DNA of 64,000 bases from Monocercomonoides exilis PA203 (Eukaryota > Protista > Preaxostyla): assembly GCA_001643675.2 (NCBI GenBank), contig LSRY02000025.1:558001-622000 (forward strand), given 5' to 3'. The position numbers and the translations under genes are program-made. This document shows, one piece after another, positions 6,591 to 64,000 of the stretch; position 1 is the first letter of the stretch; every line of letters begins with the position of its first letter. The notes beneath the pieces are model-generated. The model was not told the DNA's origin. It was given only the letters and a program-made list of their open reading frames with translations, and did not search any database.

Positions 6591-7020
6591 CAAAGATTGA
6601 AAATTTTGAAATTTCCCTAAAAGAAGTCTTTTCTCGGTGAACTGCTTTGAATTTTGATTTTTATGCAATTCTGCGAATCTGTTAATTGAATAATTTAAAA
6701 ATTGAACACACTTTCATCGTTTCATAAATGACTCTTCTTCCATTGACCATAACCCTTCAAATATTGCATTTCATCATGTTTATCCACATTTTCGTGATCA
6801 TCATTTTAAGAATTCGTATTATTTCTTGTAATTCTATTTGATCTCCAATCCTATGGCAGAAATTTCCAGATTTTCTTTAAATAATTTGAGACCATAACTG
6901 TTTGAAAAAATTTTTTAAATTGCATTTCAATGAATAAATATTGCTTATTAATCTTTAAACGCTCTTGTTTTCCAACCCTTTCAAATTGACAAAAAGGATC
7001 ATTAAAACTTTTGTTGAGGG

Positions 7021-7155
7021 ATTAATTGGAATAAACTAGGTCTTTCTGGAATAAACTTTTTTAATTCGAATAAACTGGTGTTATCTAGAATAAACTTTGG
7101 TTATTCGAATTATTATTTTTATTTCAATAAAATTTTCTTATTCCAATACCATCTA
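7021..7155. repeat. Array of ~20-bp quasi-palindromic units; right part of the same MITE-like family as 3810-3950
   Basis: About 7 GAATAAA-type units at 20-bp period, ending TATTCCAATACCATCTA. It is inverted to 3810-3890 and shares a direct ~40-bp match with 3911-3950. Confidence 0.65.
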
Positions 7156-8183
7156 CTAGTTGTAATATGTAGTTCATGCTTTGGTACGTCTGCTTTGCAT
7201 GAATTCAGACAAAGCTCATAAAAGCTTTTTGAAATTTTTGAATTGATAAAAAAAGATACCAGGCAAAAAAGTGAAAGCCAATTGATTGAATTTGTTTACA
7301 GTGTAACTTTTTGTTTTTCCATTTTCATTAAAAGCGGACACTTTAATGATGACAGATCTGCAGCAATTTCTCAGTTGCCAATGAATGAAAAGCTTCAATC
7401 TTCAACAAAATCATCCTTTCGATGTTAATCGGCAAATGTTTCAAACAAAAAAAAATTTATTCCTTCGAAATATTCATAAAATCAATTTTGTTTTTTTGAG
7501 AAGTGCATGATTATGATTAACTCATTGTTTAACGTTAACCTCTGTGTCCTAACAAATAACTTTCAGCACTGTCCGTCACAAACAAATAAAAAAAATAAAT
7601 AAAATTAAATAATAAATTTGATAGAACGCAGTGAGACAGGATTTGCTCCGAAATAATGAGTTTGATCTTAAAATATGGGTGGTTTGAGTGAAAAACTTCA
7701 CCCACCCCAAATGACGTGGAAAAAAGGGCGAGATAAAAGTTCAAAACAATAACATAAAAAATTAAATAATAAATTAATGTATTGTCAGCTTCACTTCACC
7801 ACCGACTTCGCCTTTTCGCCTTGGTCACGAAGACCAGAGGGCAGGGGACATTGCCCCTCGGAGCTGTCTCCTGCATTCAGTGCAGGGATCCGGTGAGGCG
7901 AGTATTCTGGTCGGAGCAGAAAGAAAAACCACTCTCGCTTCCGCGAGGCGTGGAAAAGAAAACTGCATGTGATATGCTCTGCCTCCCGCTCTTCTGCTGC
8001 ATCAGCAGAGCAACCCCAATCATCACACACTGCATAATTAATAATTAATTCTTCTCTGAAAAAACAATAATAATCTTGTAAAGGAGGAGGATCATGCTTG
8101 AACTTTTTATTTGTTTCCATGTTTCTCTAAACAGGTTCTAGGTGCACTCTTGTGACTTCGGGCGGTTGATCTTTTCCTCTTTC

Positions 8184-8371
8184 CTTTTATATCTCGCCCT
8201 TTTTCTCGTCATATTCCTCCAAATATGTTTCTCTCTTACGCACCCAGCCACTCTGAGTCTCTCCATCCGCGTTCGTATTATTTCGGAGCAAATCCTGCTC
8301 ACTGCGTTCTATCAATTCGCAATAGAGCGAATATACGAACGCAAGGAGCAGGTTTGCTCCTCAATAATGAG
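8184..8371. repeat. Internal complementary region (ICR) of the DIRS element
   Basis: 8277-8315 is the reverse complement of 7618-7658. 8316-8371 is the reverse complement of 11888-11944 with several mismatches. 8184-8212 is inverted to 7711-7739. Confidence 0.85.
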
Positions 8372-8870
8372 TTTTGAAATCCCTCGTTCTCCTCTCTCCT
8401 CTGATCTTAAACCCTCATGCCTAGCACCTTGCCGTGCGGCGGATGACCAGAGGGACTGCGGATGAAGGTGCGGCCTCTATCCCTACTCCCTCCCCCTCTT
8501 GCGCTGTTTTCGGTGGGTTCTCGATCGGGTCTTCTGTGCTTGAGCGGGCATGACAATTTGTCCTATGCTTCTCTCTCCGCGTTTCCCCCGATCGGTTTCG
8601 AGCTTCTTCTGCAAGGCAGTTTGTCTACCCTCCGTAAGCTCCATAATGTTGCGGGGAATTATGGAGGGTGTCTCATCACCCTTGGGAAGTTGTGCTATAT
8701 CGCTCTCGTGAGGCGAACTCCTCTCTCGAATTGACCCTCGACTCTTCGACCTCTTCCTCTTGCTCTGCTCCCCCCCCCCCCAGTTGTGATGTTTCTTCAG
8801 GATACTCCTTTGCTCCAGATTCTGTATTCTCATTTGAAATCTCTTTTCCTTTGCTGTCCTTCTCCGACTT

Positions 8871-9818
8871 TTATCCCTTTTCAACAAGGGGTACTGGGCC
8901 TCCGATTGTCTCCAGGATCCATCTCGTGTCATGAACTGGTAGCACGGTGTAATACCCCTGGGCTTCTCTAGAGCCTGGCGCCCATCTCGCGTACGCATTA
9001 ATTGCTTTCCAATCTGCCGCTTGTTGTCTTGCCAAATGTGTTATCACAGCGTGTCTTATCGAATACGCGGTAAATGTGTCGGGTATTCCGTTCTCTCTCA
9101 AGACAGCCACTAATTCTTCTTTAATCCTCTGCAAGTTTGCAGGTTGCCTCTCCTTGATATCGAACCACACATGTTCGTCTCTATAGGTTGTCTTTGCATA
9201 ACCCATCCAACGTTGGAGCGCTACCACCGCATCGATGCGTGGATTTGGATGCTTATTTATAATAACATTTACAGTCTCTCCCTCTGATGTTTTCGTTCGT
9301 ACTTGTGTCTGGACTAAATCCTCTTTAAGTATCGTTGTCTCTCTTCTCATCCTCTCCAGCTCTGCTGGCCTTAACGCACCAAATATCATAGTTAAAATGA
9401 GAGCCCTCCTTTGGAGGGTCTGTGGGTCTTTCATATCGTGAGTGGCTTCAGCCCATTTCGTGATGATTTTCAAGTCACACATTGATTTGTATCGTTTGCC
9501 TCTTCTTGGTTTCTCCCCCACATAGGTCTTTAGAAATATCTCTATGTCTTTCACGTCAACCTTAGTCTCTCTGAAGAGGTTAATAGAATCCAGCACTTTC
9601 CGTACTGTCTGATTTATCACTCCGCTTGAGAGGTTTGTATTCGAGAGTGTTTCAATGAACTCCGCCATAATCCACTTTGCATCTTTGTTTGTGAGGGGGT
9701 CAGTGTCATCCATGCTCTTATTATCTAGAAAATGTTTGAATCTTCGCAGCGCTCTCCACGTATCTCTTTCGCTCTTCTGATTTTTTAGTATTGCTGCTGC
9801 TATGTCCTTCGCTCCCAC
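8871..9818 (-). CDS. Tyrosine recombinase of the DIRS element
   Basis: 315-aa ORF with catalytic motifs in order: R (GALRPAEL), K (RTKTS), HxxR box as YSIR, W (ARW), Y (GYY). The start is GTG, the true 5' end is probably frameshifted, and the same frame continues past TAA with further stops. Confidence 0.85.
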   Translation of the reverse strand: MGAKDIAAAILKNQKSERDTWRALRRFKHFLDNKSMDDTDPLTNKDAKWIMAEFIETLSNTNLSSGVINQTVRKVLDSINLFRETKVDVKDIEIFLKTYVGEKPRRGKRYKSMCDLKIITKWAEATHDMKDPQTLQRRALILTMIFGALRPAELERMRRETTILKEDLVQTQVRTKTSEGETVNVIINKHPNPRIDAVVALQRWMGYAKTTYRDEHVWFDIKERQPANLQRIKEELVAVLRENGIPDTFTAYSIRHAVITHLARQQAADWKAINAYARWAPGSREAQGYYTVLPVHDTRWILETIGGPVPLVEKG

Positions 9819-9849
9819 ATGTTCTCCTCATGCAAAAAAAGAGGTCACT

Positions 9850-10600
9850 TCCCTGTATATTCTCTTCTCAATAATAACGCTTATTTCCTCTCCTGAGTGT
9901 AATTTACAGCCTTCCCTTCTCATCTTCGCTTCCGGAATCATGCACTCCTGAAATGACCCCAGGGTCTTTGTCAAATGCCCAGGCTGCAGTAGCTAGGTCC
10001 AGGTCTGCACCTGCCAGGATGGCAGAATCAGAATCGTCAGTCCCCTCTGAGCTTCGTTCATCTTCTCTTTCAGGGTCCGTCCAATATTTCTCCGGAAAGG
10101 GTGGACTAGCATTACCTCTCTTCCTTGCGTTTCTTTCTCTCTCTTTCTTCTTATGGAGGATAGTCTGCAAATACTTCCGCAGGGCACCAGCGCAATCGGT
10201 TCTGAAATTGTATCTTGTGTTCTCTGTGTGATTATTTGCAATATCTCTGCGACCTTCTCCCCGCTCAGTGCATTGTCCGGTTTCTTCTTAGTCCGGCTGA
10301 GTGCATTAACTGGCATTTTAGCTGAGATATGAGGAGCCTTCTTCAATTTTCATCACACCGTGCTGTGCGACTTCTTTCTGTATCCTTATCTCACGATCTT
10401 ACGAGGTCATCACATTTCTTATATTCTCGCGATATTTCGCGGTTTCTATCTTTGTATCTATTTCGCAATTATATGATGTTTTTCGTCGTTTAATCGTTTC
10501 ACTGGAGCTCGCCACTATTTTCTCTTCCCTCTCTCTGTTGCGACTCTTCGCGACTCCTCTTTCCGTCACTACTGCTGTTCCCATCAGTTCGTTCCAATTA
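9850..10600 (-). pseudogene. DIRS pol remnant: RNase H C-terminus plus DNA N6-adenine methyltransferase-like domain
   Basis: HISAKMPVNALSR resembles the RNase H end HIPGxxNxxADALSR. LVHPFRRNIGRTLKEK..TILILPSWQVQTW resembles the DIRS MT motif (FPP..I...L.K....ILI.P.W..QPW). Stops and frameshifts are present. Confidence 0.65.
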
Positions 10601-10639
10601 TCGTTCCCGTTGCTGTTCCCACTTGAATCCTTGGGGGAG

Positions 10640-11750
10640 CTAGGGGCAGGGGGACTGTGATCGGGGCAAGCCTCCCAGCTGGTGCTGGGGTATTCTGTGG
10701 TGGAGTTTGTGTTGTCTATCTCCTTTCTCTAAAGATCGTAAAGCTCCCATAAAGCCACATTTCAGGAACTGTCTGTTGGCGAAGCCCTGAGCATTCCTGC
10801 CTACGCAATATCTTCTTGAGCACCCATTCCCGTCCGAGATGAGGCAGAGGGCTGTTGACGAGTCGGGAGATGCACCGAACCCTACGGGATCTCCCTCTGC
10901 TTGAAAAAAGCTGGTGTTCTCCACCAGCCTCCTGAGACATTCAGAAGCATCTTTCGTCATTTTCTCTTCAAGGAACCCCTTCACATTCTTTAAGTTCGAC
11001 TGGGGATTTTCATTCAGAAAATCAATGCGACTGATACAGTCAGCAACAAGGGTTTAAGTTCAGAATAGTCCTCTCAGACTCTCTTTCTCTTCTAATTTAA
11101 GGTGCGCTTTCCTTTATTTCTTTGCTATGGGGATGCATTCACTTTGGATTTTTAATGCCCGATTCAACAGCAGGTTGAAAAAGATCCATTATTCTGCTCT
11201 CTTCCGATGAATCCTTCCTTCCCAAAGCTGTGATTGCTCCGCTGGCTGAAGTATTCCAGATAACGTCTGTTAGTCCGAAAAAAATTTCTTTTCGCGTTAT
11301 GAAATAAATGTGTTTTTGATATCTTCGCTCATTATATTCGAGCCAGCTTTGCAAAATTCAATAAACTTCTTGAGTTCTCCAGCTTTCATTTGGTGCGTCA
11401 GCCATTCAATAGTGAAAATTTTTGTGAAATTTTGTGACATATCTTCCTCTTCCCGCTCTTCTATTCCTTCGAAATCACAATCGCTGTCCTCTTCGTCTTT
11501 CAACTTCTTCATTTGATTAAGAACGCGACAGCCCCTCAACAACTGTCTGCGTTTCTTCTTTGTGATCATATCATGGAAATTTGTTTCAAACTCCGATTCG
11601 CTTGAACTCTTCCTGGATTTTCTTCTTTGTCGCTCTCTCTTCACCTTTTTCATCTGAATCGCATTTGTTGCTCCAGACTGTGTTGGTCATGTTCGACTTC
11701 TTGTTAATTCTTCTTTCACATTTTTTCCTCTCATCAGTCTTTGCGCAAGA
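10640..11750 (-). pseudogene. Broken gag-like ORF1 of the DIRS element
   Basis: Short same-strand ORF pieces (11297..11653, 11139..11354, 10640..10984) between the 5' terminus and the pol remnant. The assignment is positional only. Confidence 0.4.
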
Positions 11751-12601
11751 TCAAAATCCTTTCCCTCACCGTCTCTGTCAACCGATCTTACAGGTTCTTG
11801 TTGTATTTTCAGTGCGGACAATGGTATCAAAAACAGGTTTGAGTTTTAGCGAAGTTTGATCTTTTGCTACCAAAAAATTCATCCAATACTCATAATCGAG
11901 GAGCATACCTGCTCATTGCATTCGCATGTTCGCAACATTGCGAACTTTCAACATCCAACATCACTTTTTCTCCACAATTTTTATCTGTTTTGATTTTCAT
12001 TCCTTCATTCAAACAAATATCCAGAAAAGTCATAATCTTGCTCTTTCTCTTTCATCAACTTGTTGCATCGCAACGATCAGCTCTCTTCCTTGCAATTATG
12101 TTCCAAAAAGCGAAATAATGAAAATTTTCATAAACAGTTCTTTTCTCCCGCTTTTTAAAGGCAACAGATGCAGATATCTTCAAACCGATAAAGAACATGA
12201 TAAATACAAATGAACAGTTGTCCTCATTCAACGTTTGTGAAAATAAATATCCTTTTTTGTTGTTTTATTTTTTAAGATAATATTTCTCATAATGCTGGAT
12301 TTCATTTATCTCCATCATTAACAAGCATTGTCAAGGAAACAATATTCCGAATTTCACAACAAATTTTTGTTTGATAATCTAAAATTTATCTGATAAGTTA
12401 TTTTATGAATTTGAAAAATCAGTTTGATCGATGAAACCATTACAAGAAACAGATAACAATTATTCATTGCTTTTCTCGACAGTTGCTTGCCAAAAATGTC
12501 AATGCAAAGAAGGACTGTATGAAAGCTTATATTTTATTGATTGTGCAATGTTTTTATTTTTGTCATTTTGTTCTTTCAAACTGGGCGATTCTTCGAACGA
12601 A

Positions 12602-14145
12602 ATGGCGTATTGCGAATGCTTTCTGGATGAATTAACTCGGGGGAAAATGAAGGAGCATCCAGTCGAAAAATTCACTGGTTTGCGAACAATATTTATTTGA
12701 ATCCTTGATGATTGCGTTCTTTTCTTAATTTATTTTGAAGAATTGTTTTCTGAACTGGAGAATTGTTCTGAAATGGAGCAAAAACAGAAAATTGAAGAAA
12801 TGAACGAACTGATGAATGAAATGAACAAAGTTGAAATTTGCTCTGTTTTCACAAATGGACAGCTCGACAGACTGAACAAAATGATTGAAGAAAGGAAAAT
12901 ATCTTTGGAAAATGCCATTCCGTTGTTGAAACACATGGGGTATTGCAAAGCGATGAAAGATTTCTTAGGAACTTCGCTTTGCAAATCGTCTTTACAAGAA
13001 AGATTTGAGAAAATGATTGTTGAAGAGAAGAAGAAAAAGAATGAAAAGCTTCTTGTTGATCTCTGCGAATGCTATATTTCTCTGTACGAAAGTCTTCGAG
13101 AGGCATTATTTTCAATTTGTGTACCTTGCCTTCTGAAAGTTGCATTGAACAAAGAGGAAAGCGAAGAGAATCAAAAAGAAGTGGAAATGGCTTTGCTTGC
13201 TATGTCAAATATTAAAGCATATCATGTATGAAATTAAATCTTCCTTTTTAAAGACGTTTGTTTCGATTTCAATTTCAATTTTTTATTTAAATATATATTT
13301 TATTTTATTTTTTCGTGAAGCGTGTTGGAAATGGACTGTATTTGAACGAGATGACAGAAATCTTGAAGTATCATCAGAAAAATCACTATTTGACACGACT
13401 TGCCTATCAATCAGCATGGGTGTTTTTGATAAGCAGATGGACTTATGACAAATTTCTAAACAGCAACGTTTTGAATGAATTGCATTTTGTTGGAGAAGCA
13501 ACAAGAGAACTGGAAGAGTTGATGAAATGCGCGGATTGGAAGAGAAAAGAAGAAGAAGAGGAAAGAGGAAAAGAAACGAAAGAAGAACTTCTTTTATTGA
13601 GGTGGCTTGTGATAATAGATTTTTATTCTCAAAAAGTCCAAATACATGGAGAAGAATTCGTCAAACTGACAAGATGCATCATAGATCTGTGCAGAGCAGC
13701 AAAGGGAAACTGCAGAGAAATATATAGGAAATGCTATTCATTTTTTTATTATTACATTTTTAGAGCCGAATCTTTTTACTACTCGTTGTGCGAAGAGGTT
13801 GCTGACTTAATTTTGGAGGAAATGCATGGGCCAACGATTGACAATGAAGTTACAACATTAAACATAGATGCTTTTTATGATTTTTTGAGAGTATTAAGAG
13901 GAAAAAGGGAAAAGAAGAATAGTTTAACTTCGTTTATTTTGTTTGCCTGGAACTGGCTGAATGGAAAGGCGAAAGAAGAAATTGAAAAAGAAAATCAGAA
14001 AGTGATGTTGTATAGAGAGCTGTGCGAAAAGATGGAAGAGGAAGGATATGAAGATTTAATTGTCAGCTTCTATAAATCAGTTTTTGATTTAGCTCATTTT
14101 AGGGCGTTATCAAAAAATCCAAACGATTATTTTGTTTATCATTAA
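12602..14145 (+). CDS. Uncharacterised helical (ARM-like) protein of a lineage-expanded family
   Basis: Introns 12678-12740 and 13226-13320 join the ORFs in frame (EKFT-ELFSELE; AYH-RVGNGLYL). Motifs CVPCLLKVALNKEESEENQKEVEMALLA, LTRLAYQSAW and KMEEEGYED are recalled from a large oxymonad family. The start could instead be the ATG at 12647. Confidence 0.75.
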
Positions 14146-28743: not shown

Positions 28744-31700
28744 ATGGAGGATAGCAAAAGTTCGAGCAATCCACCAAGTGCCACAAGTTCTTCATCAACT
28801 TCTCAAAAATTGGATTCAAATTCTCAATCTTCTTCATCATCTTCTTCAATTGAACAAGAAAGTTCATCATCTTCCAACTTACCTTCTTCTTCTGCATCTT
28901 CTCAACAAGATGACACTATTAATGAAGAAGAGCCTAACCAAAACGATCAATCCGAACAAGCAATTGTGGATACACTCCGTTTTAAATTTATAATTAGAAA
29001 TATTTCTGTGACAAATGTTAAAGCATTCGATTCATTCACAAGTGACATTTTTTTCACGTTTACTCTTGGGGGGAATTATAAAATCGTAGATAATCGTCAC
29101 AAGTTTAAACTTTCTATCATTTAAATTTAAATTATTTTCTTTCTTTTACAAATGTGAATAAAAAAATCCAGGGGAGGAAAAGTTGAAGCAGTAGGAAAAA
29201 AAGGACCAATATTTAGAACTTCCACATACAAAAAAGTTAAATCAGAAGATACAGGTACTCTTAAACTTGTATTTGCGTTCGAGTTTATTATCAAAATGAA
29301 ATTTAACAATGTGTTTTTTGTTTCAGTGAAAATGAGAGATTTTTGGATGGCTTACTGGATTGGAACAATTGAAGAACTTAGAGAGCAAGAGCTAAAAATT
29401 GATGTTTGCGAAGTTGATTTTTATGTGTTTAATATTTCAATATCTAACTTCATATTTATTTTTTCTTTTTTTTTCTACAATCCAAAAGTGCTGGAATTCT
29501 AACTTTTGCTACAAAAACGATTATATGGGCTCATTCAAAATTAAATTGTGGGAACTGGCAAATGGCCCTATATCGTACGACAAGAAAGAAATAGAGCTTC
29601 ACAAGCCTGGAAAGCACGAAACAACCGCAAAGATTTCGTTTGATGCGTATTTCCAGGAGCTTCACGTGTTTTCAGTGTATCTTCACGACTTCCACGCAGA
29701 GGGATTTAAGCTGCCAGCTGGGGAAACAACGGTTGATCCGTATGTTGTGGTCAAGCTCATGAGCGGGGGCACAGTGAAGATGAAGTCCATCAAGAAGACG
29801 CAGTCCAAGCCCGAGAAAAAGACGGTGAAACCAGACTGGGATGATGTGGGGAACCTGACATTCCCTGGCATCCGGAGCGAGTTCGAGAACGAGGACATGC
29901 AGATCGAGGTGTATGCGAAAGGGGCAATCCTCGACACGCTGCTGGGGGCGACGATGGTGCCCATGCGGGGGCTGGCGGAGCTGGGCTTCTTCGACACGCA
30001 GATGGAGCTGAGGGACACCGCCCAGGGCTCCATCAGCGGCTACGTGGACGTGCTGACGCTGCCGCAGCTGCACCAGTCAGAGGAGAAAGTGGAGCTGAAG
30101 CCGTACTACCGCTACCTCTGCATTGACGTCAAAAGCTGCACCGACCTCATCGCGGTTGGCGAGACGGGATATTCGAGCGCGTATGTCGTGGCGGAGTGGG
30201 ATGGGGCTAAGCAGCAGACGAAAGTGGTGAAGGAGGACCTGAATCCAGTCTTTGACCAGACGCTGTTTATCCCCATGATGAAGACAACGACGGTCAGCAA
30301 GACTGCCATCCAGGCAAAAGGAAATATCAAACTGTCTGTGTTTGACTGCGGGAACAAAGGGAACGACTTCCTGGGCGGGGCAGAGGTTCCGCTGTGTAAC
30401 ATCACAGATGGCGGAGTGGAGCCAGATCCGCAGGACAACACACAAAAGACACGCACTTTCTTCAACAGCGGCGGACTGTTCTTGACACAAGGCGGGCAGA
30501 AGACAGAGAAGGGGAGCAAGATCATTGTGCGGTGCTACTTCCACCCAGACATGCCGTCGAAGCTCAAACTCGACCCACCCCCCGCGAAGGAGGAGCTGAA
30601 GATACCAGATGCCCTCCTCGACTGCATCGCTGAGTGGCACAAGACGATCCCTCCTCACCTCGCGCTGAACTCGAACTACGAAGTGGTGGCCACGAACGAA
30701 GACAGCGAGTCGCATTTCCTGAGCTGCTTCCTCACCGACCGCATTCCCATCCCGAAGCCTCTCAGACACCCGCGGCTGCTGATGCGGATGGTGCACTCGA
30801 TGACGTTTGCAGAAGACGCTGACTCGTTCCGCGGCTTCGGAATGCAGGACATGCGTGTGTTTATGTCCCCAAAATTCATGCTGCAGATCCGCAAGGGCGA
30901 CGACCAGGAGCATTCGATCCTGCTGTGCTCGCTTTTCCTGTCGATGGGCATAGACGCCTATTTGTGCCTGGGCTCTGCAAAGAACGGGAACCCGCACGTG
31001 TGGGTGATGACGCGAGAGTTTGACGGGACGGTGTTGTTTTGGGAGACGACGTCGGGGGTGGCGATTCCGTGTGTGCTGAGGTGGCAAGGGAGCGATGACT
31101 GCCCGCCGGATTATGTTCTGTACAGGAATGAGCTGCTGGGAATCAAAGCGAAGTCGCATCCAGTGATTGAGGAATGGAGGCAGTGGAAGGAGGAGCAGAA
31201 GAAGCTGTTCAGCAGGAAGAAGAACAAGAAGCCGCTGCGGCAGGTGGTGGCGAATCCGAGCGATCCGAACAGCCTGACGGAGATGGTGGTGATGGGAGAA
31301 GACGGGAAAGAAGGGAAAGAAGGAGGGGAAGGAGATGAGGAGGAGGAAGAAGAAGGATCTGCAATTGACACAACAGAATTGGAGGAAAAAAGGAAGGAGC
31401 TTCAGAGGAAAACGAAGCGTGCGAGAGAAATAGAAGAGCAGAAGGAGAAAGCGAATGAAAAATCACCAAAAAAACTAGAACAAAAGGGAGACAAGCAGAA
31501 TTCAGATGATTTTGAAGTGGTTGATGAAGCTGATGTGCCTGAAGAATCATCTGCTTCAGCTTCTTCCAGCAGTGCACGTCGTAACATCCGCCACGAATCA
31601 CACATTTCTGTGGGATCGCCAAGTGTTCTGACTGTTGATGCTTCTCCATCTTCCTCTTCTTCCTCTTCTTCCTCTTCTTCCTCTTCTTCCTCTTCTTCCT

Positions 31701-33139
31701 CTTCTTCCTCTTCTTCCTCTTCTTCCTCTTCTTCCTCTTCTACCTCTTCTTCTTCAGGAAGCTCGCACAGTACACTGCCGAAGTCCAAGCTGAGCAAGTC
31801 GAGCGATTTGGACTTCACCGACGACGATGCAGTTGTGGTGGACATAAACGAGCAGTCGCAGCTGGATGTGATGGCAGGCGTCCCCAGCGAGCAGATGAAG
31901 TATGCATCGATGATGATGATGAATACACCTTCTGGAGATAATAACAGTAATAGTTATAACAGTGGCAATGATATGATGGAGAGCTCGGCACATTCACAGA
32001 GCGCCATGTCACCTGGCTCAAAGAATGGCCATCCACCTCCACCTCCCCCGCCTCCCCCTCAGATGAAGGCTTCTTCTTCTCAGGCTTCTATTTCTTCTGC
32101 TTCTTCGCCTTCAATCACCTTTGGAGAAACACACCACGTATCATCCTCTGGAGCTCCTCCTCCACCGCCTCCTCCTCAGCCTACTGTTGAATTCAACCCA
32201 TTCGCTGCAGCTGTTGTTTCTGTGTCCAGCCCAGGCGATGTCTACCACGACGGCCGCTCTGCTTCTATTTCAGCAACAGCATCAGCAGCGTTACAGCAAA
32301 ATGGGTCTTCATCTGCTTCTGCTTCTTCTTCTGTTGGCTCTGATGGCGCTGAAGACGACGGGACAGTTGTGCTTGCAGTGGAGGCGCCAGTGTGGGAGTG
32401 CCATCTGCCTCCAGTGTATCTGCCGTATCTGACTGTGGATGTGGTCTGCAACAACAAGAACGTGTGGGGCAATGCGCAGCATCTGGACCCCGCACTGATT
32501 GAATACGACATGGAGAACGAGGAGCACTGGAAGCCTGTGCTGACGAAGGAGACGAAGGAGATTCCGAACTACCCGATCCGCCCGTTCTTTGACACTGGGA
32601 CGGAGAAGATTCGGCTGCCTACGCCTGTCTCGACCGCAAAGGTGGAGCAGCTGGAGAGGCAGATCTACGACGAGCTGAAAGTCGGCTTTTTGAACTGGCG
32701 GCACACGCGCTTCATGAAGAGCGGGTGGCTGACTGATCTGGATGCGACGCTGCGGGCGGGGCTGGTGACGCTGGAGTACGAGGAGCTGACGGGTATTCCG
32801 AATCCGCGAGGGATCGAGGCGTGGAAAGGGGATGTGTCGCGCCTTGTGCCGCCTGGCTGTTCATTCAGGGGAATGCCGTTCAATTTTTGCTATACCGATG
32901 CGAGGAAGATCCGGCACTACATCATCGACAACTTCGATTTCCACAAACACCCTTCGGAAAATGCGAAGTTTGCCTTTGCGGCGTTTGTGTGTGCACACTA
33001 CAGCAGCGTCTGCTCTGTGTGGGTGTATGTGGCACAGATCACACCCAGCCACGAGGACAACACACAGACGGAGAGAAAAGGGATGAGCGGAGGGCCGGCG
33101 ATGGCTGGAGGAATACCCGCGGTGCAGAGGAAGTGGTAG
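28744..33139 (+). CDS. Multi-C2-domain protein with an inactive transglutaminase-like domain (CC2D2A/MKS6-CEP76 superfamily)
   Basis: C2 motifs (DPYVVVKL..KKTVKPDW; SAYVVAEW..VKEDLNPVFDQ; VFD..NDFLG). TGL motifs GDDQEHSILLCSLF..AYLCLG..HVWVMTR..FWETTSG and NKNVWGNAQ. C-terminal GMPFNF..AKFAFAAFV..VCSVWVYVA. Several short 5' introns at 29085-29490 were not precisely resolved. Confidence 0.85.
31648..31755 (+). repeat. (TCTTCCTCT)n tandem repeat encoding poly-Ser
   Basis: Direct inspection; in frame within the C2/TGL gene. Confidence 0.9.
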
Positions 33140-36209: not shown

Positions 36210-39200
36210 TCAGTTGCGAGTGTTTTGGCTGCTGATAAATATTATTTCTGAGGAGTCCAAAGGTCCAGACTGCTCCACTTCTGAATTTTCCTGAGACCCT
36301 TCTTGGTAAGTGACTGCATCAGACATGGTGAGGATTACAGCTCCAGCTGGGAATCTCTGGATGAATTCTCGTTTCAGATCGCTCAGTATTGGCCTTGCTC
36401 CTGGCTTCTCGCTCACTGCCAATTTGACCAGCTCACAAAAAGAAGAGTCGCGAACTGCAGCCATATCTGGCCTTTCTCCATTCATAATCTTCTTTCCAGC
36501 CACCTCTGCCTCATACTCCCCAAACGGGATCTGCAGCGTCAGGCACTCCCACAGTATCATCCCGATCGAGAACGAGACTGACTCCTTTGTTGCTCCCATG
36601 TTCTTGTTGATCAGCAGCTCAGGTGCCTTCCATCTCAGACATTCTTTTTTGAAACTATCCTCATCCTCAAACGCAGATGAAGGAAGAGAGTAGCTTTCAT
36701 CACTGGCAGAAGTGACAACAGTTGATGATGTGGATGATGAGTCTGAATCATCAGACAATAAGTCTGAATGCATCACAATGCAGATGACTATGTGTTCTGA
36801 AAACAGAACAATGTGAGGGCTCAGATTTGAAAGTGACTGAAGAGGATTTTCCATTTCATCAAACGAGTGAAGTGCCCCATTCGCCACCCAAAACAGGATC
36901 TGGGCAGCTGTTTGCTCTCTTTGTTGAAGACTCCCAATTGCCATCTCCTTCTTCTCGTTTCTTCCATGCAACAGCATGAACAGAGAATCCCTCAAGTCCA
37001 CAATCAGCTTTTCATGAGGCGAGGAACAGGCCATTGCATCCACCATATTCGACATTGACGAAGTGGTTGGGCACAAATCTTCCCCTCGAACAAATGTTGA
37101 ATCTGAATCAGTTGTTGAAGTGGATGAAATGGATGGAGAAGGAGATCTCATTCTTGTCTCTTCCTCTTCATCCTTCTCCAATGCCCATTCAGGAATCTTG
37201 TCTGAATCTTTCCCCAAGATATATTCAGTGGAGCCACTCTCACTCAACAAATGCTCTGATGACTCAGAATGCTCCATATTCGTATCATATATTCTCTTTT
37301 TTGTCCTCTCCTCATTCTTCTTTTCAACTTCTCTCTCTGCTCTCCTCCACTGCTCCTCCGGTGACATTTCCATCGTCACCATTTCAAATGCCTTCGGATC
37401 TTTTCTGATATTATCATTCACAATCTCTCTCAGATCTTCTGCTTCATTCTTAACCTTTCTCCATCGAACAGCCAGAACAACAGATACAATCAGAACAATC
37501 ACAAGAATAACTGCCATGATTATAACAATTAGCAACAAATAAGATTTTCCTTCATTTCCTCTTTCAACAAGTTTTTCATCTCCTTTTGATCCAGACTCGC
37601 TTCTGTTCTTCAGAATAAATGACTGTGTGGAAGAAGGATTCTCTGCATTTCCAAACAAAATATGAACACTCACTTCCACTTCATTTCCACAACTGCTGAT
37701 AAGATCTTTATCCACACTTCCTTCAACTTCTCTTTCGGATAAAAATCCATTTGAATCAAAACCATAATGTTCAATCTCTTTCTCTTCTCCCTTCCTCTTC
37801 ACAACTGAGAAGGTCAGATTGCATGGAATAAGAAGCATCCCTTTGAATGTCAGCTTCAATCTATCTGTTGATTCTTTTGCTTCCGCACTCTCCAACACAG
37901 GAATGAAAAATGATGAATCCCTCTCTGAAACAATCCCTTCAAAATTGCACCCTTCATTCAACATCCAAAGAGAAGTGTTTCTTTCCCATCCATCTCCTCC
38001 TTTCAAACTCATCACATTCAATGTTCCTGAATCTGAGCAAATGATATTTCTTCTCAGTGATGAGTATCCTTCAATTGATGGATTGTTGTTCACAAACTCT
38101 CCTTTCTCAATTATCACATTTCCTCCACTCAATGATATTCCTCCTTCAGCTGAATTCAAGATTGTTGTGTCTTTCATCATCACAGAACTCTTCGCAGAAT
38201 CAAAAAGAGATCCATTCCATCGGCATATCTCTTTTTCCCAATTCAAATAATTCTCCTTCCTTTCCTCTAAACTTCCTTCAAACACACATGACTCGATCAA
38301 TATCTTGTCTGCTGATGTGATCGATACTTGGCTCCCCTTTTGTGATTCTGATGTGCACTCATGAAACGAGCAGTTGCTCATCTCAAAACCTTTCATGTAC
38401 TGAGTTATGCAAACAATGCAAGACCCACAGTTTGATCGGCTGATGTTCGAGAATGATGATAACGCAAAAGATAAAACGAGTGAAGAGTAGCTGTTTTCAA
38501 ATGAGATAAGACTTCTATCTTGCAGAGAAATGTTTGTGACTGCCAACTTCGAAATGCTCACTTTCTCACTCTTTCCACATTCAATTACTGAACTTGTGAA
38601 TCGGATATTGCACACTGTCAGATCCTCAAATGTTGCTCTTTTCGAATTCAGTACCTGGAATACGGACTTCGAGAATTCCAGACAGCAAACAATGCACTTT
38701 TCTGCCTCAAATATCCCATCCTCAACAACCAATAAAGAAGAATCAAATGATGTTCGCGAATTCTCTGTGGTTCTGCTCTCAGACAGAAATGAAACAGATT
38801 CGAGAATAAGATATCCGTTCAGTTGGTAAATCAAGCTCGAGAAGGCAATATTCTGTATTCCACCAAAAACAAATGAAACTTTCTCAATTCGAACAGACTC
38901 CGAAGTTGTCACCGCCTCTTCATCAGCCAAATCAATTTCATTCACTTTTATCTCAGCATTCCTGCTTGCCTCCATCGACTTGATTGTCACCTTCTGAGCT
39001 AAGCACGAACCAGTTAGTGTTGTTTCATTCCATATCAGCAGTTGTGAATAATCAGATGGGATGATGTGGCTCACCCCAACATTCAGTGATCTGCATGCAC
39101 CCTTCATCTCCCCACAATTCTTGCTGTCGCTGCTGTTCCCCACAATCGATGACACAAATATGAATTCGCTCCTGAACACATACACTCTTCCCAACAGATC

Positions 39201-42200
39201 CTCTTCATCCTCATAATTGTCTGCTGTGCATCCCCATATTGCCAGCTCCTTCACAAACGGCTCACCAAAATTTATCAGGAACTGTGATTCACTTATCTGC
39301 GAGTCAATGTCAGTGCACTTCACAAACACATCTCTCCCCTTCAATGCAGCATTCCCTCGGAATGTGATGTTCGATAGCACAAATGGCAAAGTCTTCTGTG
39401 CAACACTCTGTGATTTCAAAAACAATCCTCCTCCTCTCCCAATGTTCGAACAGAAACACTCTGTCACATTTGTGTGATTCATCTCCAGCCTTCCCTTCTC
39501 ATTGAGAAGGAAAAACATCCCTCCTTCATTCGAGCTTGTTGATCCACACCCATCAATTGTTGAATTATCTATTTTCAGTCTCACTTCATTTGCCACATCA
39601 CAGAAAAGCAGTGAAGGGTTGCTTGACACATTGTGCTTCACATTCGCAAATGTGCATTGTTCAAATAGAATGTTCCACTCTTCTTCTGAATTATCATTCC
39701 CCTTCACAGTAATCACACTTTCACTCATCACAATTGCACTTTTCCCACTCAATGAAATGACTTCAAATGTCACATCGCTCATGGTTGTTACACAATCAGC
39801 TGATATACTCATTATCTCATGCATCGTTGAGAATCCAGCTATTTCTGTATTTTCAATCGAAACAATTCCTTTCAAGGCACTGATCAACACAAATGACACC
39901 TCACCAATCGCATTGCCAATTGTGTGAATTGAACAGCTCACAACACTCGTTTTGACTGAATCTGAACCTGTCTGGATGAGGATGTTTGCAACATTATCAA
40001 ATGCAGTCGGAATCGGCATCCCCACTTCTTTGAATTGAACAACCCCTTTGCACTCAACAATCACATTCACATTCCCTTCAATCTCTTTCACAAATCGGAT
40101 TTTGTCTGGCTCCCCATTTGTTCCTTCCAGACTCATTCCACTCACATTCATTTCACTCCTCACATCACAAACTCCATGAATCATCATCTGCTCGACTGTT
40201 GAACTGCCGATACGATTCATCCCATAATCAACAGATCCACACGGATACTCCAACAGCCCACACACAACCACATTGTTTCCTTCTCGCGCCACATGCACAC
40301 TCGACCCAACCTCTTTCCAGAAATAGATCAGTGGGATTGCACACTCTCTGTTTCTTCCATCATACCCTCTCATCGAATCTTCTGTCAGCGCCTCCAATCT
40401 ATCTTTCACAAATGACAGGGTTTCGTTCTTGATGCTGCTGATAAGCGATGGAGATGAAACAAACAAGTCCTTTCCAAACTTCGCATTGTTTGGTTTGTCA
40501 GATGAAAAAGTTGGAGAGGATATCACAAAATCTGTCTCGCCAGATTCACTCAACAAGCTCAACATTATTCCTCCTCCATATCCAACAACTTCCCCTTCGT
40601 GCAGTGCTGTGCAATAATAAAACTCACACTCGTTCATCAACAGATTCGTATTTGCAGATGCCTCATAAAAGAGTGCACCTCCTCCAATCTCATTTCCTTC
40701 TCCTTCAACAGCACACCCTTCAAATGTGCAGTCATTTATTTCTGTTTTGTAATCGCTTCCATCATGACCATTCATTATGCTGATGCACCCTCCACTTCCC
40801 TTCGAACGAGTAATCGATGAAAATGTGCACTCAGACATCTCTTCAACATTTCCACTGTGGCACTCAACAACACATCCATTATCAAATATGATTTCTCCAA
40901 AATCGCTATTCGTCATATTCAGTGAAGGGCTTGAATTAATACTTCCCTCAACAATGAAAAACGATGAATCTCCTATTTTAATATTCCTTGATCCAAACTC
41001 ACTCACTTCCACAGCCCCTCCAGCAGCCTTCACAAACACTGTTGTTATAGCCTCAGAGCCTCCTTCCATCCCACATTCATTTAGTGTAAGCTTCCCTGAA
41101 TAGCACTCAAACACACTTTCATGAAAGATCAGCGATTGAATCAAAGAAAATACAATGCTGGTCATTGACACAGAAACTGAGTTCTCAATCAATCCACTTT
41201 GCGTTCCCTCTTTCTGATCAGAAACATCACACTTTATGTTTTCCCCTTTTCCTTTGATGCTCCATTCATTCGAAGTCAACGCCAATTCTTCCTCAAAGAC
41301 AAATGGCTCAAGAAGAGCAACATCTTTTTTCTTCCCTTCAAAATGGACCGATGCTGCCTTCTCAATTGTGGAGCATGGAAATGATTCATATCCACACATC
41401 GAAAAATCATGACTTGACGATCCTCCTCCAACAAAGGCACACCCCGAAAAGTTATCCCACAGATACACCACCAGCGGAATGGAAAATGTCTCATTCAGCG
41501 TTGATCTCTCAAATCCATTCATCCCTTTCATATCATTCAAATTAACGTCAAATCCAATCGATGTTCCGTCAATCACACTTGATAGATCAAAAGAGTTAAT
41601 GAAGATTTCTTTCCCTTTTCTCGCATCGCACCCAGGAAATGAAACATCCTTCAAGATGAATGAACTCGCTCCACCATTCAAATGAAGATAAATCCCTCCC
41701 CCATATCCACGCTCTCCACCTGCTGTTTGCGTTGCCTTGCAGCTCACAAGTTGAAATAAGTCGTTTTCATCATTTGAATACATTGAATTCGCTTGGGAAG
41801 CATCCGTCACATTTCCCACAGCGAATCTCGATCCTTCTTTCGCATCAGCCCACAATCCTCCTCCATTTCCTCCATTGCTCTCACACCCGCACATGGTTCC
41901 TCCAACAATTTCAAGAGAACAATCTCTCCCAAGTGTGCATTCAACTGCCCCTCCATTTTTTCCATCTCCTTTGAATCCACTCATCGTGTTGTTTGCCAAT
42001 TTAATAGCCTTCACAGAATTTGTCGAAATTACTCGAATTGATCCTGATGGCAAATCTGTTTGGGAAGATGCTTTCACTGAAAGTGTTGAATCTTTAATCG
42101 AAAAAGATGCTCCATTCGCCATCCCAAACAAAACACTATTTTCTGTCGAGCTCATATCCTCGGCACTCAAAGAAGTGAATGCTCCAGCAGCATTGTTTCC

Positions 42201-45200
42201 GTCAAGGCGAATCAATGGATGATTCCCAATCACCAAGGATGATACAACAAAAGACGAAACAGACATCTCGCCTGCTGTTACAGATAAAAACACAAAAGAC
42301 AAGGCTGATCGAGAATTTTGAAATGTCAGTGAGCAGCTCTTGAGCGAAAATGATTGTGAAGAAGAAGAGAAAAGTATTTCGTGATTTTCGAGTGCAGAAG
42401 GGATTGAGAAAACAAGTGATTTCAAAACAGTATTTGCACTTATTGTTATCATGCTTTCTTTGCTTCCATCAGGATCGTCAATTACCTTCCATCCACTGTT
42501 TCCATCTTTCCCTCGGATTGTGTGTTTGAAGGATTCAAATATCAGCTCATTTTTCAGTTCAATCATCCCGTAGACAACAATCTTCTTTTCCTTTTCTTGC
42601 CTAGTCAAAGAATGTCTTAGAGTTAAACAAGGGACTTCAGAAAATCCACAAAAAAAATAATCAAATGCATCAACATTACTCACAACAATCTCTTCTGGCA
42701 AAGGAATCAAATAAACACACATCGGTATTGGGAATGATACATTCCCATTATCATATCCTTGTATCTTGCTCTTTGTATCGAACGAGGCTGTCAATGAAGT
42801 GATCTTCCCACTTTTTGCTATTGATTCCAAGTTGATCGAGTCAACAAAAATATCACTTCCCCATTTGGCTCTGTTCCCCTCAAATCCTGATGAAATCTGA
42901 AAGTTTGCATTTATATCTCTCACTTTCAGCCCAATCCCTCCTCCTCTTCCTTGGATGGTCGAGGCATAACAGTTCTTCACAACACCTCCATTCATTGTCA
43001 ATGAACCAACATTCCCCATTTCAACCATCATTCCCCCTCCAAACTCAGAGGCTTCACTCCCACAGCCATCAAGTGTGCATCCCTCAAGAGTTATTGAATA
43101 TGACCCTTCACCCACACCCATCAGCGATGATCCTGCTGTTGTCCTCACAATGTTGTTGAATGTGCAGTTATCCAGAGTCAATGTGACAGACGATCCTTGA
43201 GAAAGAGATATCACACTTGTTGTGCTGAATGTTTGTGACCATCTCACATCTTTCATCTTCAAACTTCCCCCTTCCATCTCCACAAGTGAGTTCTGAATGC
43301 TCCTCTCTTCTGAATGAGCAGAGTTCATCGATATGTTCATTCGCTTCACATCCATCAACCCACTTCCCTCAACCTCAAACAGTCTGCATTGCCTGTTGTT
43401 TTCAAACGATGTGTCGTGAACCACAGACAGATCATTCACAGCCAATTTCCCTGTTCCAACACAAAACAGACTCAGTCCATTTGATTCAAACTTTGTTTCA
43501 ATGGCTGAGCCAGCTGGAGAAACTCCATTCACAGTGATTGTTTTCTCCCCAACGTCAACTCCTTTTCCTTCCACAACTGTTCCATTCAACACCTTGATTT
43601 CCTCCACAAACCCCACAATCATTTGGGAAAGGCAATGGCTGATTGTGAGGCATGCATAGCTTTCATTCAATCCACAGCTGAATGTGTTTTTTGCATTTGT
43701 TTGATTTTGAACTGAAGCAACAAATCTGCATCGTCCTCCAGCATTCGGAAGCCATTCACTTTTGTCAGTTCCATTTGCATGATATCTGTTTCCATCGGTA
43801 TTTGTTGAAAAGCATAAAACAAGCTGGTTGGTGGATGAAATTTCATGAATAATAACATCACAACCGCGAGGTGCGCTGTTGTTATGAAAAAAGCAAAACC
43901 ACAAAAGATCGCCATTGAAACCTCCAGTGTTTATGCTTACGCCACCACCAATCCATTCTGAAAGACAATCTTTAAAAACACAGTTTCTGATAACAAATTT
44001 GTCAGACTGAATGGTATCATATGCTCCTCCTCCTCCGTTTATTGAACTATGCGCACTGCAGTTTTTGAATAGACAATTAGAAATGCAATCTTTCGTTTTT
44101 GCACTTTTTGAGTACTGAATTCGAATTCCCCCACCATCATTGCACGACCAGTCATCTTTGAATTGGCAATTCTGAACAAATACTTGAACGGATAATCCTT
44201 CTGCACAAATTCCAGCACCTCCAAAATCTGTTGAAGAGACACAATAGCATTCTTCGAACAAAGAATTTGTTACATTTAATTCGGCAATATTCTGAGCATA
44301 TACACCTCCACCTCTTGTCGATGTCGCATTGCATTTCACAAATGACGAATTCTCGACTGTCAGTGTTGCACTCGAATTGCCATAAACATAAAGTGCTCCT
44401 CCGCATGAAGCATCGCATTCGATCCATTCAGCGTTTTTGAAGTTCTGTGTCTGGGTGGTTGTCAGTCTATCAGTGTTTTTCATTCTCGAATCAACCCTTT
44501 TATTGTGGAGGAATGTGCAATTGTTGCACAAAAATGAACCAGATCCTTCTGTTCCACTCGCAATCCCTCCCTCAAGCACATTCATCGATCTTTTAACATC
44601 ACAATCCTCCATTGAACTCCTCTTCATCAATGTCATTTTTCCAGTTTGCATTGTCTCTGTTTCACAATATTTATTTGTGATATTCGCAAATTTGCAGTTT
44701 TTTATTCCTTCAAAACTTCCTGAACCATCTCTCAGAAAACTGCATCCTCTCCCGCAAAACACATCCTCAAACTCACTATTTCTCACAAACAACGAAGACA
44801 AATCACCCCCTTCCATCTTCACCACACTCCCCATCATTCCACATTCCGGACCATTCCCAATTCCCAAAGTCGTGTTTATCAGACAACATGTCCCTCCATT
44901 CCTCACATAATTCCCATTCCACTCATTGTTTCTCACAAACACGCTCCCTTCAACCTGCAGTAATGATCCTGCTCTTATTTCAATCATCACACAATCTTCT
45001 GGCTTTTCAAGCAACATTCCCTTCAATTCAACTGATGAGTTGTATATTTCGCAGAACGTACGAACAATACTTCCCCTCTCCAAAATACCACTCTTCTCCA
45101 TCCCACGAGCATGGAAAGCATAATATTCATTTCTCAATCTATCGTTTCTGTCTTTGCCACAAATTGTTGACAACAGGCACACAAGAAAAACGAAGGGAAT

Positions 45201-62709: not shown

Positions 62710-64000
62710 TCAAACTTTGACTTTCTTTTCTTTTCCTGCATCACCTTTTATTCCAACTGTGTTCTCATGTGAATCACGCTCATCTGTTGTTCCGAACATG
62801 TTGAAGTCTGTTAATGAAGGCTGAATCAGATTATTAATTGCGACTTTTTCCAGTAAATCTTCTACTTCGTTAATAACTTTATGACTATCTTTGGGTGGTG
62901 ATTTATCTTCAATGAACTCTTTTAACATGTTCCACATTTTATTTGCCTCTCCAATTGTTTTGACTTTTCTTTTTCTTCCTTCTTCATCAACTTTCACCTT
63001 TTCGGTTATTTCATCTTCGGAAACATTCGACTTTGATATTATTGAATCAACAATCTCTTCTTCGGATAGAATTTCTCTTGTTATTTCGTGATCTTCAGCC
63101 TGGTAAAATTCCTCGGCAGTTATTTCGAAAAGATCGCTGTCTCTGGTTTTCAATTTTTCAAACAGCACATTATACTCGTTCATTTCATCTTCCTCGATAT
63201 TCACAATTACTTTTTCTTTTTCTTTAGCAGGATCCCATTCCGCATGCTTGAAACAATTTTCTATTGTTTCCTTTTTAACTTTTTTCCAAGCTTTTTCCAC
63301 CATGTTTAAAACTTCAAGTATTGTAATCTTCGTTGCAACCCCACATTCAACTTTTGCCAGTTTTTTTCTAAGAAATAGACATTTATAGAAGTGTTTAAAG
63401 ACTTTGATAATACCTGCGTCCATTGGTTGGATAATGGACGTTACATTAGGAGGTAAATAAAATAATGAAACATGAGACAAATTGACACTATCTGCACTAT
63501 GAGCTGCACAGTTGTCGACAATTAACGCAATTTTCCTATGTGAAATGGACATTTTTTCGTTAAGTCTTTTGACGTAATCATTAAAAATGACTGCATTCAT
63601 CCATGACTTTTTTGAATGATTATAAAGGGTTGGTAAGAATTTTCCTTTCAAACATCTTGGCGATTTTGATTTGCCGATCACAAGAGGGCATAGCTTTTCT
63701 CCTGTCATACTTGCGGCAAGAAGAACGGAAACCCTATCTTTCGATTGTTTGATTCCAGAAACCGAACAACTGCCTTCGGTAAAAGTTTGTTTCGCTGATT
63801 GATTGTAAAATAAACCTAATTCATCTGCGTTGAATATGTTGTTCTCCCCATATTGATTTATAATTGTAGGCAAAGTAAAATCAATCCATTTGGCGGCACT
63901 GTCCTTGTCTGCAGACAATGACTCTCCAACGATTTTCTTTGAAGTTATATTGTATCGCATTCTCCATCGTTCTATCCAACTATCCCAGTTGCGTTCTGAA
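62710..64000 (-). mobile_element. pogo/Tigger (CENP-B-like, DDE_1) transposase; 5' part beyond the window end
   Basis: Motifs IFNADELGLFY, KDRVSVLLA, P.VIGKSKSPRC, KSWMN, LIVDNCAAH and LPPNVTSIIQPMDAGIIK (DD31D). The frame stays open to the window edge (WIERWRMRY, HTH end). Confidence 0.93.

Follow-up and report, generated by a model that had tools for sequence, protein, structure and literature searches.

In the genome of the metamonad Monocercomonoides exilis PA203 (Preaxostyla), a 64,000-nucleotide stretch of contig LSRY02000025.1 (positions 558,001 to 622,000 in assembly GCA_001643675.2; hereafter the window, whose own numbering is used throughout) carries a 4.3-kb DIRS-type retroelement at 7618-11944. 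The sense strand of this copy is the minus strand, with the element 5' end at 11944 and its 3' end at 7618. The window copy is probably defunct, mosaic and present only once in the genome, and would belong to a sub-lineage, lacking reverse transcriptase (RT), of a DIRS1-like family. The element has weak inverted terminal repeats (ITRs), the family's internal complementary region (ICR), a recombinase region, and degraded traces of the remaining frames, arranged as follows.

7618-7700, minus strand: 3' (right) terminus; the plus strand begins TTGATAG, and approximately nt 7-83 form the right ITR in family copies
7701-8276, minus strand: 3' untranslated stretch of ~0.58 kb that separates the ICR from the right ITR
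8277-8315, minus strand: right half of the ICR, the reverse complement of the 3' terminus at 7618-7657 (39/40, one 1-nt indel)
8316-8376, minus strand: left half of the ICR, the reverse complement of the element's own 5' end at 11884-11944 (50/61) and of the 5' end of the full-length C13 copy (61/61)
8504-10302, minus strand: remnant of the long recombinase frame, residues ~461-1060 of a 1066-codon frame
8871-9818, minus strand: open 315-codon stretch with a tyrosine recombinase domain (Pfam PF00589, E 4e-10)
9673-9856, no strand: change-point interval between a putatively younger 3' segment and the older remainder
10306-10330, no strand: deletion junction with ~20 nt of filler; RT, RNase H and most tandem repeats are gone
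10519-10787, minus strand: remnant of the start of the RT frame, residues ~65-128 of open reading frame (ORF) B, with one 36-bp unit and overlapping the gag C-terminus
10643-11839, minus strand: gag pseudogene of a divergent lineage that is otherwise unrepresented
11884-11944, minus strand: 5' (left) terminus, ending ...ATTGCGAA, without the family's terminal TT

The two halves of the window copy are discordant. When differences were counted against a 58-nt majority reference, identical to the natural ICR of locus L002, the left half of the window ICR had the commonest family sequence, with 0/61 changes, and its right half and the 3' end combined had 1/80. The 5' end differs from its own ICR at 11/61 positions, every one of them on the terminus side (binomial p 0.001), and five of the mismatches already lie in the outermost 23 nt. 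Private substitutions, whose density was computed against 29 sampled copies, amount to 43/2100 (2.0%) between 7618 and ~9718 and to 38/587 (6.5%) over the following stretch up to 10306. The change point is best placed at 9719 (Fisher p 4e-7, support interval 9673-9856), a position at which private substitutions do not jump in other copies. The architecture is also a singleton, since no other genomic locus spans 10307-10700 and 10306-11975 is sequenced to the same depth as the unique left flank, against a 10-200 times greater depth in the 3' part.

The locus itself is no assembly artefact. In Logan contigs (four public runs of one sample; such contigs cannot show rare forms), to which a 31-letter rule for spanned joints was applied, both 10306 and 11944/11945 are spanned with zero differences; beyond 7617/7618 the contigs extend just 28-29 nt, which is under the 31-letter rule. 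A low-depth contig joint 7644->8357 (depth 5) and a single row with letters between, 8368->7658 (depth 3.8), were considered as circle junctions and taken for graph artefacts, as they lie at or near a 22-nt repeat shared by the ITR and the ICR.

The element had been delimited in an initial annotation, made from the letters of the window without database searches, and its outline of a DIRS1-type element with an ITR/ICR circle-junction layout is borne out. The predicted ends at ~7618 and ~11944 coincide with boundaries common to many copies with unrelated flanks: 38 other genomic matches begin at query position 1-12 on the 3' side, at least 35 copies having their start in common with the window copy at 7618, and of 40 matches that cover the 5' part, ~25 terminate 0-9 nt from 11944. 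Its reading of the ICR as complementary to both ends and joining them at GCGA-ATT-GATAG likewise agrees with the alignments given above: the ICR (8277-8376, ~100 nt) consists of two abutting halves that adjoin as ...CTATCAA followed directly by TTCGCAAT..., with GCGAA-TT-GATAG on the other strand. Within 7000-12600, the only perfect inverted repeats of at least 18 nt are the ICR/terminus arms. A second, shorter inverted-repeat block (7721-7738 versus 8187-8204) has both arms conserved in 6/6 alignable copies, while a seventh lacks the anchor motif; this block (GACG.GGAAAAAGGGCGAGAT) lengthens the pairing of the ICR with the 3' terminus into a ~700-nt panhandle over the 3' untranslated region (UTR).

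Other parts of that annotation need revision. The termini are indeed inverted repeats, but weak ones in the window copy (42 nt at 76%), and the inner ITR at its 5' end has no match at all to the 3' ITR. The "short ITR" of 45-55 bp thus reflects the failure of the window's inner ITRs to match and is not a family trait: ITRs of other copies are ~80 bp long, inside the published range of 66-316 bp (Piednoel et al., 2011; PMC3266345). Nor does the view that all cis sites were kept hold, as the 5' end agrees with its own ICR at 50/61 positions only, the inner ITRs are unmatched and the terminal TT is absent. A mobilisable copy would be expected to have both termini cognate with its own ICR, matching inner ITRs and more than one copy of the same architecture, and the window copy has none of these; what it shares with a mobilisable derivative is the lack of RT and a deletion common to copies that transposed. 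Because its ends are mismatched, the window copy is probably immobile.

RT-bearing master copies, for which the initial annotation had proposed a genome search, do exist. Three copies were read end to end, namely one full-length copy (C13, comprising loci L002 and L031), one nearly complete older copy and one RT-less copy (C25). The C13 copy is 6542 bp long, and its ICR matches its 5' end at 61/61 and its 3' end at 42/43 positions; the ITRs measure 77-82 nt in C13 and C25, at 86-87% identity (87% in C13). It encodes a 425-codon gag-like frame, a second frame with an RVT_1 domain (Pfam, E 3.7e-27) followed, past one stop, by RT_RNaseH (E 1.8e-8), and a 1066-codon frame, overlapping that of the RT, with a phage-integrase-type recombinase at its end (PF00589). 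No integrase domain was seen in the frames scanned (the recombinase and RNase H frames, the 425 aa of gag, and the 3' end of the RT frame, residues 241-700). The 188-aa tail that follows RNase H has no Pfam match; a language-model search places it adjacent to clusters in which 12-15% of members belong to PF05869 (Dam), which we treat as a lead only. With gag, RT, RNase H, recombinase, ITRs and ICR all present in the C13 copy, the family is a true DIRS1-like tyrosine-recombinase retrotransposon.

The RT-bearing frame also contains an array of 36-bp tandem repeats (L031:469-1009, ~15 units in C13) that encodes a charged 12-residue motif. The number of units differs between copies, the repeat also occurs at G000:C36:629196-629768, and kilobases of related 36-bp arrays lie on contig C48 (C48:67000-72800). 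An MgtE_N Pfam match in ORF B is spurious and produced by these repeats.

Flanks and termini were compared in 14 other copies. Twelve of the 14 end in GCGAATT, sometimes followed by G or GA, and twelve start with TTGATAG, the starts of the remaining two being truncated; all flanks are unrelated. TT (1-5 nt of the junction) is found at both ends and nothing else is repeated in the flanks, a result that concerns flanks only, with no empty site; this fits recombination of a joined-end circle with a target that contains this short motif. Agreement between the 5' end and the copy's own ICR is 57-59/61 positions in a single register in younger copies (97-100% when the best local alignment is taken), 85-88% in the three oldest copies and 51-53/61 in old full-length copies. 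The ICR right half matches the 3' end over 38-43 nt at 95-100% in most other copies and at 88-90% in two old ones.

Some lineage-specific variants recur at both sites. Over the 14 copies, 11 variants are shared by the ICR and the 5' end, 12 occur in the ICR only and 13 in the terminus only; in L012, the same variant is present on both the ICR and the 3'-terminus arms, and inner ITR parts match within a copy and differ between lineages (C13 versus C25). Shared ICR/terminus variants and within-copy matching of the inner ITRs are as predicted by the Cappello model and as tested by Malicki et al., according to which an element restores its left terminus by using its right ITR and its ICR as sources, and cannot do without the ICR (Malicki et al., 2020; PMC7192593). 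One locus departs from the usual arrangement: the 3' end of L006 (L006:1501-1560) reads GCTCCTCAATAAT, the version of the other terminus and ICR half, instead of GCTCCGAAATAAT, which suggests occasional copying between the two ITRs. Two further copies, L010 (G000:C1:238666-244367) and L011 (G000:C1:257441-263140), lie 16 kb apart in opposite orientation with flanks 99.8-99.9% identical on both sides, which suggests that the element lies within a large inverted duplication, probably of palindromic form.

The deletion that removed RT is not private to the window copy. Homology to the main family (38 copies) stops at 10306, and homology to full-length copies resumes near 10330-10372 by one estimate and at ~10330-10600 by another, and runs to 11944 at 67-71% nucleotide identity; the missing stretch measures ~1.7 kb relative to the C91 copy and ~2.2 kb relative to C13. 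The same junction sequence is found in L009, L016, L023 and L027, at least 23 genomic loci span it, and the left flanks of four RT-less copies are mutually different. We refer to the RT-less copies sharing this junction, the C25 copy among them, as group 2; the 5' part specific to this group is present at at least 40 loci. The C25 copy, ~4.7 kb long, has a 5' end that agrees with its ICR at 59/61 positions and an ITR of 79 nt, and it gave no tblastn match to the full-length RT frame beyond the tandem-repeat stretch, its last ~0.4 kb having been compared by blastn only.

From these observations we infer that the RT-less lineage arose once and spread, and hence needs RT from full-length relatives. 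The suggestion that the window element belongs to a non-autonomous family mobilised in trans is therefore a fair reading for the lineage, because one deletion junction is common to at least 23 loci, but it does not apply to the window copy, which is a single-copy singleton.

The recombinase frame of the window copy survives as three tblastn pieces relative to the C13 frame, at 71-83% amino acid identity; its 600 codons contain a stop and two frame changes. At or near one of these frame changes lies a C11 run (8770-8780), the length of which may be an error in a Nanopore-based assembly. Within the remnant, which is broken both upstream and downstream of it, the 315-codon stretch is open, as first annotated, and 92% identical to C13 at the amino acid level; the catalytic-motif residues, assigned by what we take to be their correspondence with XerD and Cre, are invariant with respect to the full-length copy. 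Of the 18 private changes in the 945 nt of the domain, 13 are non-synonymous. The open frame reflects the youth of the segment and not selection on the window copy, because 8871-9818 lies wholly inside the young segment and has accumulated few private changes. A sequence search of the recombinase ORF against the PDB returned only spurious P450cam matches (E>0.04) and provided no structural residue mapping.

Upstream of the junction, the statement that both RT and gag were lost stands for RT, along with RNase H, and fails for gag, which persists as a pseudogene (11839-10643) in one frame with 45% amino acid identity over 405 residues to the C13 gag and 8 in-frame stops in ~400 codons. This region has 67-71% nucleotide identity to every other copy. 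The remnant of the start of the RT frame gave tblastn identities of 46-47%.

The history that best accommodates these data starts from the full-length element of ~6.5 kb, which in sense order would comprise the left terminus, gag, an RT-RNase H frame with a candidate Dam-like methylase tail, the recombinase frame, a 100-nt ICR, ~0.58 kb of 3' UTR and the right ITR. By analogy with the Cappello/Malicki model for DIRS-1, a sub-genomic RNA would be transcribed and copied into complementary DNA (cDNA), the left terminus would be rebuilt from the element's own right ITR and ICR, and the joined ends (GCGAA-TT-GATAG) would be recombined by the recombinase into a target holding TT, so that each new copy would acquire TT at both ends and no target duplication. 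A single internal deletion would then have removed RT and RNase H, and elements bearing the junction would have gone on spreading, for which they must have used RT and gag supplied by full-length relatives. The old part of the window copy (junction, gag pseudogene and 5' terminus) would derive from an RT-less element of a deep branch, its gag region collinear with full-length copies and its lineage without another survivor, and the 3' ~2.1 kb (terminus, ICR and recombinase domain) would later have been replaced from a younger copy. Such replacement most likely affected the integrated DNA and came about through (unequal) recombination or gene conversion with that copy. Had the hybrid passed through a round of replication, its 5' end would have been made to match the newly acquired right ITR and ICR.

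Mosaicism is common in the family: phylogenetic analysis of the 3' part intermixes RT-less and full-length copies, with the window copy among the older lineages, and module identities are discordant in both directions (e.g., C91 versus C40, 83% in the 3' part and 90% in the 5' part). A different mosaic, with 10306 as the point where a young main-family 3' part meets a foreign 5' part, was rejected because the junction there is common to RT-less copies, the 3' part falls among the older lineages and the change point lies at ~9719.

Several considerations count against the history proposed here. The ages of the two halves of the window copy are indirect estimates. Private-substitution density depends on the 29 sampled relatives, and position 9719 could mark a switch of nearest relative and not a change of age. 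Gag differs by ~30% between all deep lineages and the 3' parts by 9-18%, which makes some 5'/3' discordance normal. Trans-mobilisation is deduced from copy distribution alone, and the interleaving of group-2 3' parts with full-length copies implies frequent recombination, so that the single origin of the lineage rests on the junction sequence only.

The first alternative, which we regard as unlikely, is that the window copy is a uniformly old RT-deleted element produced in its whole 4.3 kb by one retrotransposition event, with the differences between its halves due to unequal constraint and chance decay. The junction and the collinearity with full-length copies do continue to the 5' end, the 3' part of every lineage changes more slowly than its gag, and old full-length copies likewise show ICR-to-terminus agreement of only 51-53/61. 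Yet post-insertion decay should be even, and what is found is no change in the ICR left half, one in the 80 positions of the ICR right half and 3' end, and 11 of 61 at the 5' end. Moreover, private changes jump three-fold at ~9719 (p 4e-7) with no such jump in other copies, and the inner ITRs, which match within C13 and C25, do not match within the window copy.

A similarly low probability attaches to a recombinant formed during reverse transcription, in which cDNA synthesis began on a younger RNA, switched at ~9700-9850 to a co-packaged RNA of the old lineage, and yielded a hybrid that was integrated. Its collinear parts in the same orientation, its termini without duplication, and the rampant mosaicism and two-way discordance of module identities within the family would all be expected of a template switch, which would be possible if family transcripts include the whole left terminus. 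In the DIRS-1 model, however, the left terminus is rebuilt from the right ITR and ICR of the same element (PMC7192593), and the window 5' end matches neither; in addition, a gag pseudogene with many stops would have had to supply the donor RNA, and the terminal TT expected of recombinase-mediated integration is absent. We prefer replacement of the 3' part on the chromosome to both accounts. Finally, although insertions of one DIRS element within or close to another are known (PMC7192593) and the halves differ in age, the chance abutment of two unrelated truncated insertions, a 3' fragment beside a 5' fragment, is very improbable, as full-length copies are collinear and in register across the join, at least 23 RT-less copies have the junction sequence at 10306-10440 in one piece, and the change point lies inside continuous family homology and not at a break.

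The recombinase region of the RT-less lineage raises a further, speculative idea. The ratio of non-synonymous to synonymous substitution rates (dN/dS) in the recombinase domain is 0.17-0.24 between lineages and ~0.2 among RT-less copies. Since RT-less copies have spread to dozens of loci with the recombinase region under purifying selection, the lineage might conceivably form a natural system of two components, with RT and gag acting in trans and a recombinase that must come in cis because it prefers the DNA that encodes it, although we give this little weight. If it were true, the window copy would be a trace of repeated renewal of the 3' module, with a fresh recombinase segment placed on an old RT-less chassis.

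The remainder of the window contains other repeats and host genes. To the left of the element, a repeat of ~250 bp at 6900-7160, with direct and inverted sub-repeats (AATAAACT units) and at least 40 genomic copies at 72-94% identity, looks like a miniature transposon. A dispersed repeat at 11959-13500 begins 15 nt past the element 5' end; its core (12700-13250) has dozens of copies at ~70%, and the same repeat flanks several other DIRS copies. Its counterpart on the same contig at C20:299649-301190 (92% identical) was considered as an empty site and set aside as another repeat, because the homology starts at 11959 and does not extend into the left flank. Of two host genes, one encodes a CEP76-like protein with C2 domains (29399-33139, plus strand) and the other is an ORF of 2997 codons with a protein kinase domain at its end (36210-45203, minus strand), and a 416-codon ORF at 62710-63960 (minus strand) belongs to a pogo/Tigger-type DNA transposon, as indicated by its DDE_1 transposase domain (E 7e-36).

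The window element is of an ordinary kind, found in a host group where such elements were poorly documented. Like described DIRS1-like elements, the Monocercomonoides family combines gag and RT-RNase H with a tyrosine recombinase that is encoded in a long overlapping frame; has ITRs composed of an ICR-constrained part and a perfectly matching inner part; carries near its 3' end a two-part ICR whose halves abut at the circle junction; shares a short motif between both ITRs and both ICR halves (GCTCC..AATAATGAG); and begins with NTT and ends with ATT without target duplication (PMC3266345). Its ICR of ~100 nt and ITRs of ~80 nt fall within the published ranges of 85-130 and 66-316 nt, respectively (PMC3266345). 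The family differs in its host, a metamonad, and in several details: the extension beyond the ITR is ~20-27 nt on the left end and 3-6 nt on the right, left extensions having been reported only in fungi and amoebozoa (PMC3266345); TT, and not the full trinucleotide, is constant at the left end; and the ICR lies ~0.58 kb upstream of the right ITR, with the second inverted-repeat block prolonging the pairing.

In the 2011 survey, records of DIRS elements from Excavata were uncertain (Piednoel et al., 2011; PMC3266345), and the M. exilis PA203 genome paper lists LTR (long terminal repeat) elements and DNA transposons but no tyrosine-recombinase retrotransposons, with 35% of the assembly in unclassified repeats (PMC8767320). 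Our literature searches found no paper linking Monocercomonoides with DIRS.

The RT-less lineage resembles the truncated DIRS-1 constructs of Malicki et al. (2020; PMC7192593), in which termini and ICR were kept, most coding sequence was lost and copying took place in trans. Those constructs were engineered and followed to the cDNA stage only, whereas the Monocercomonoides lineage carries a natural deletion, occupies dozens of loci and has kept the recombinase region.

Internally deleted LTR derivatives of the LARD (large retrotransposon derivative) and TRIM (terminal-repeat retrotransposon in miniature) types keep their terminal cis signals and spread by means of proteins of autonomous relatives. 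Those elements have LTRs and depend on a DDE integrase; the RT-less DIRS lineage instead has ITRs, an ICR and a tyrosine recombinase, the last spared by the deletion.

The window copy is also a cautionary case, as ends that are readable in the sequence can still hide a post-integration patchwork; its short ITR and its open recombinase frame are products of this patchwork history and not of function. For the organism, the analysis documents structurally complete DIRS1-like elements together with a propagated RT-less lineage in a metamonad. For the family, the co-variation of the ICR and the termini in natural copies offers comparative support for ICR templating, which has been demonstrated experimentally only in Dictyostelium (PMC7192593).

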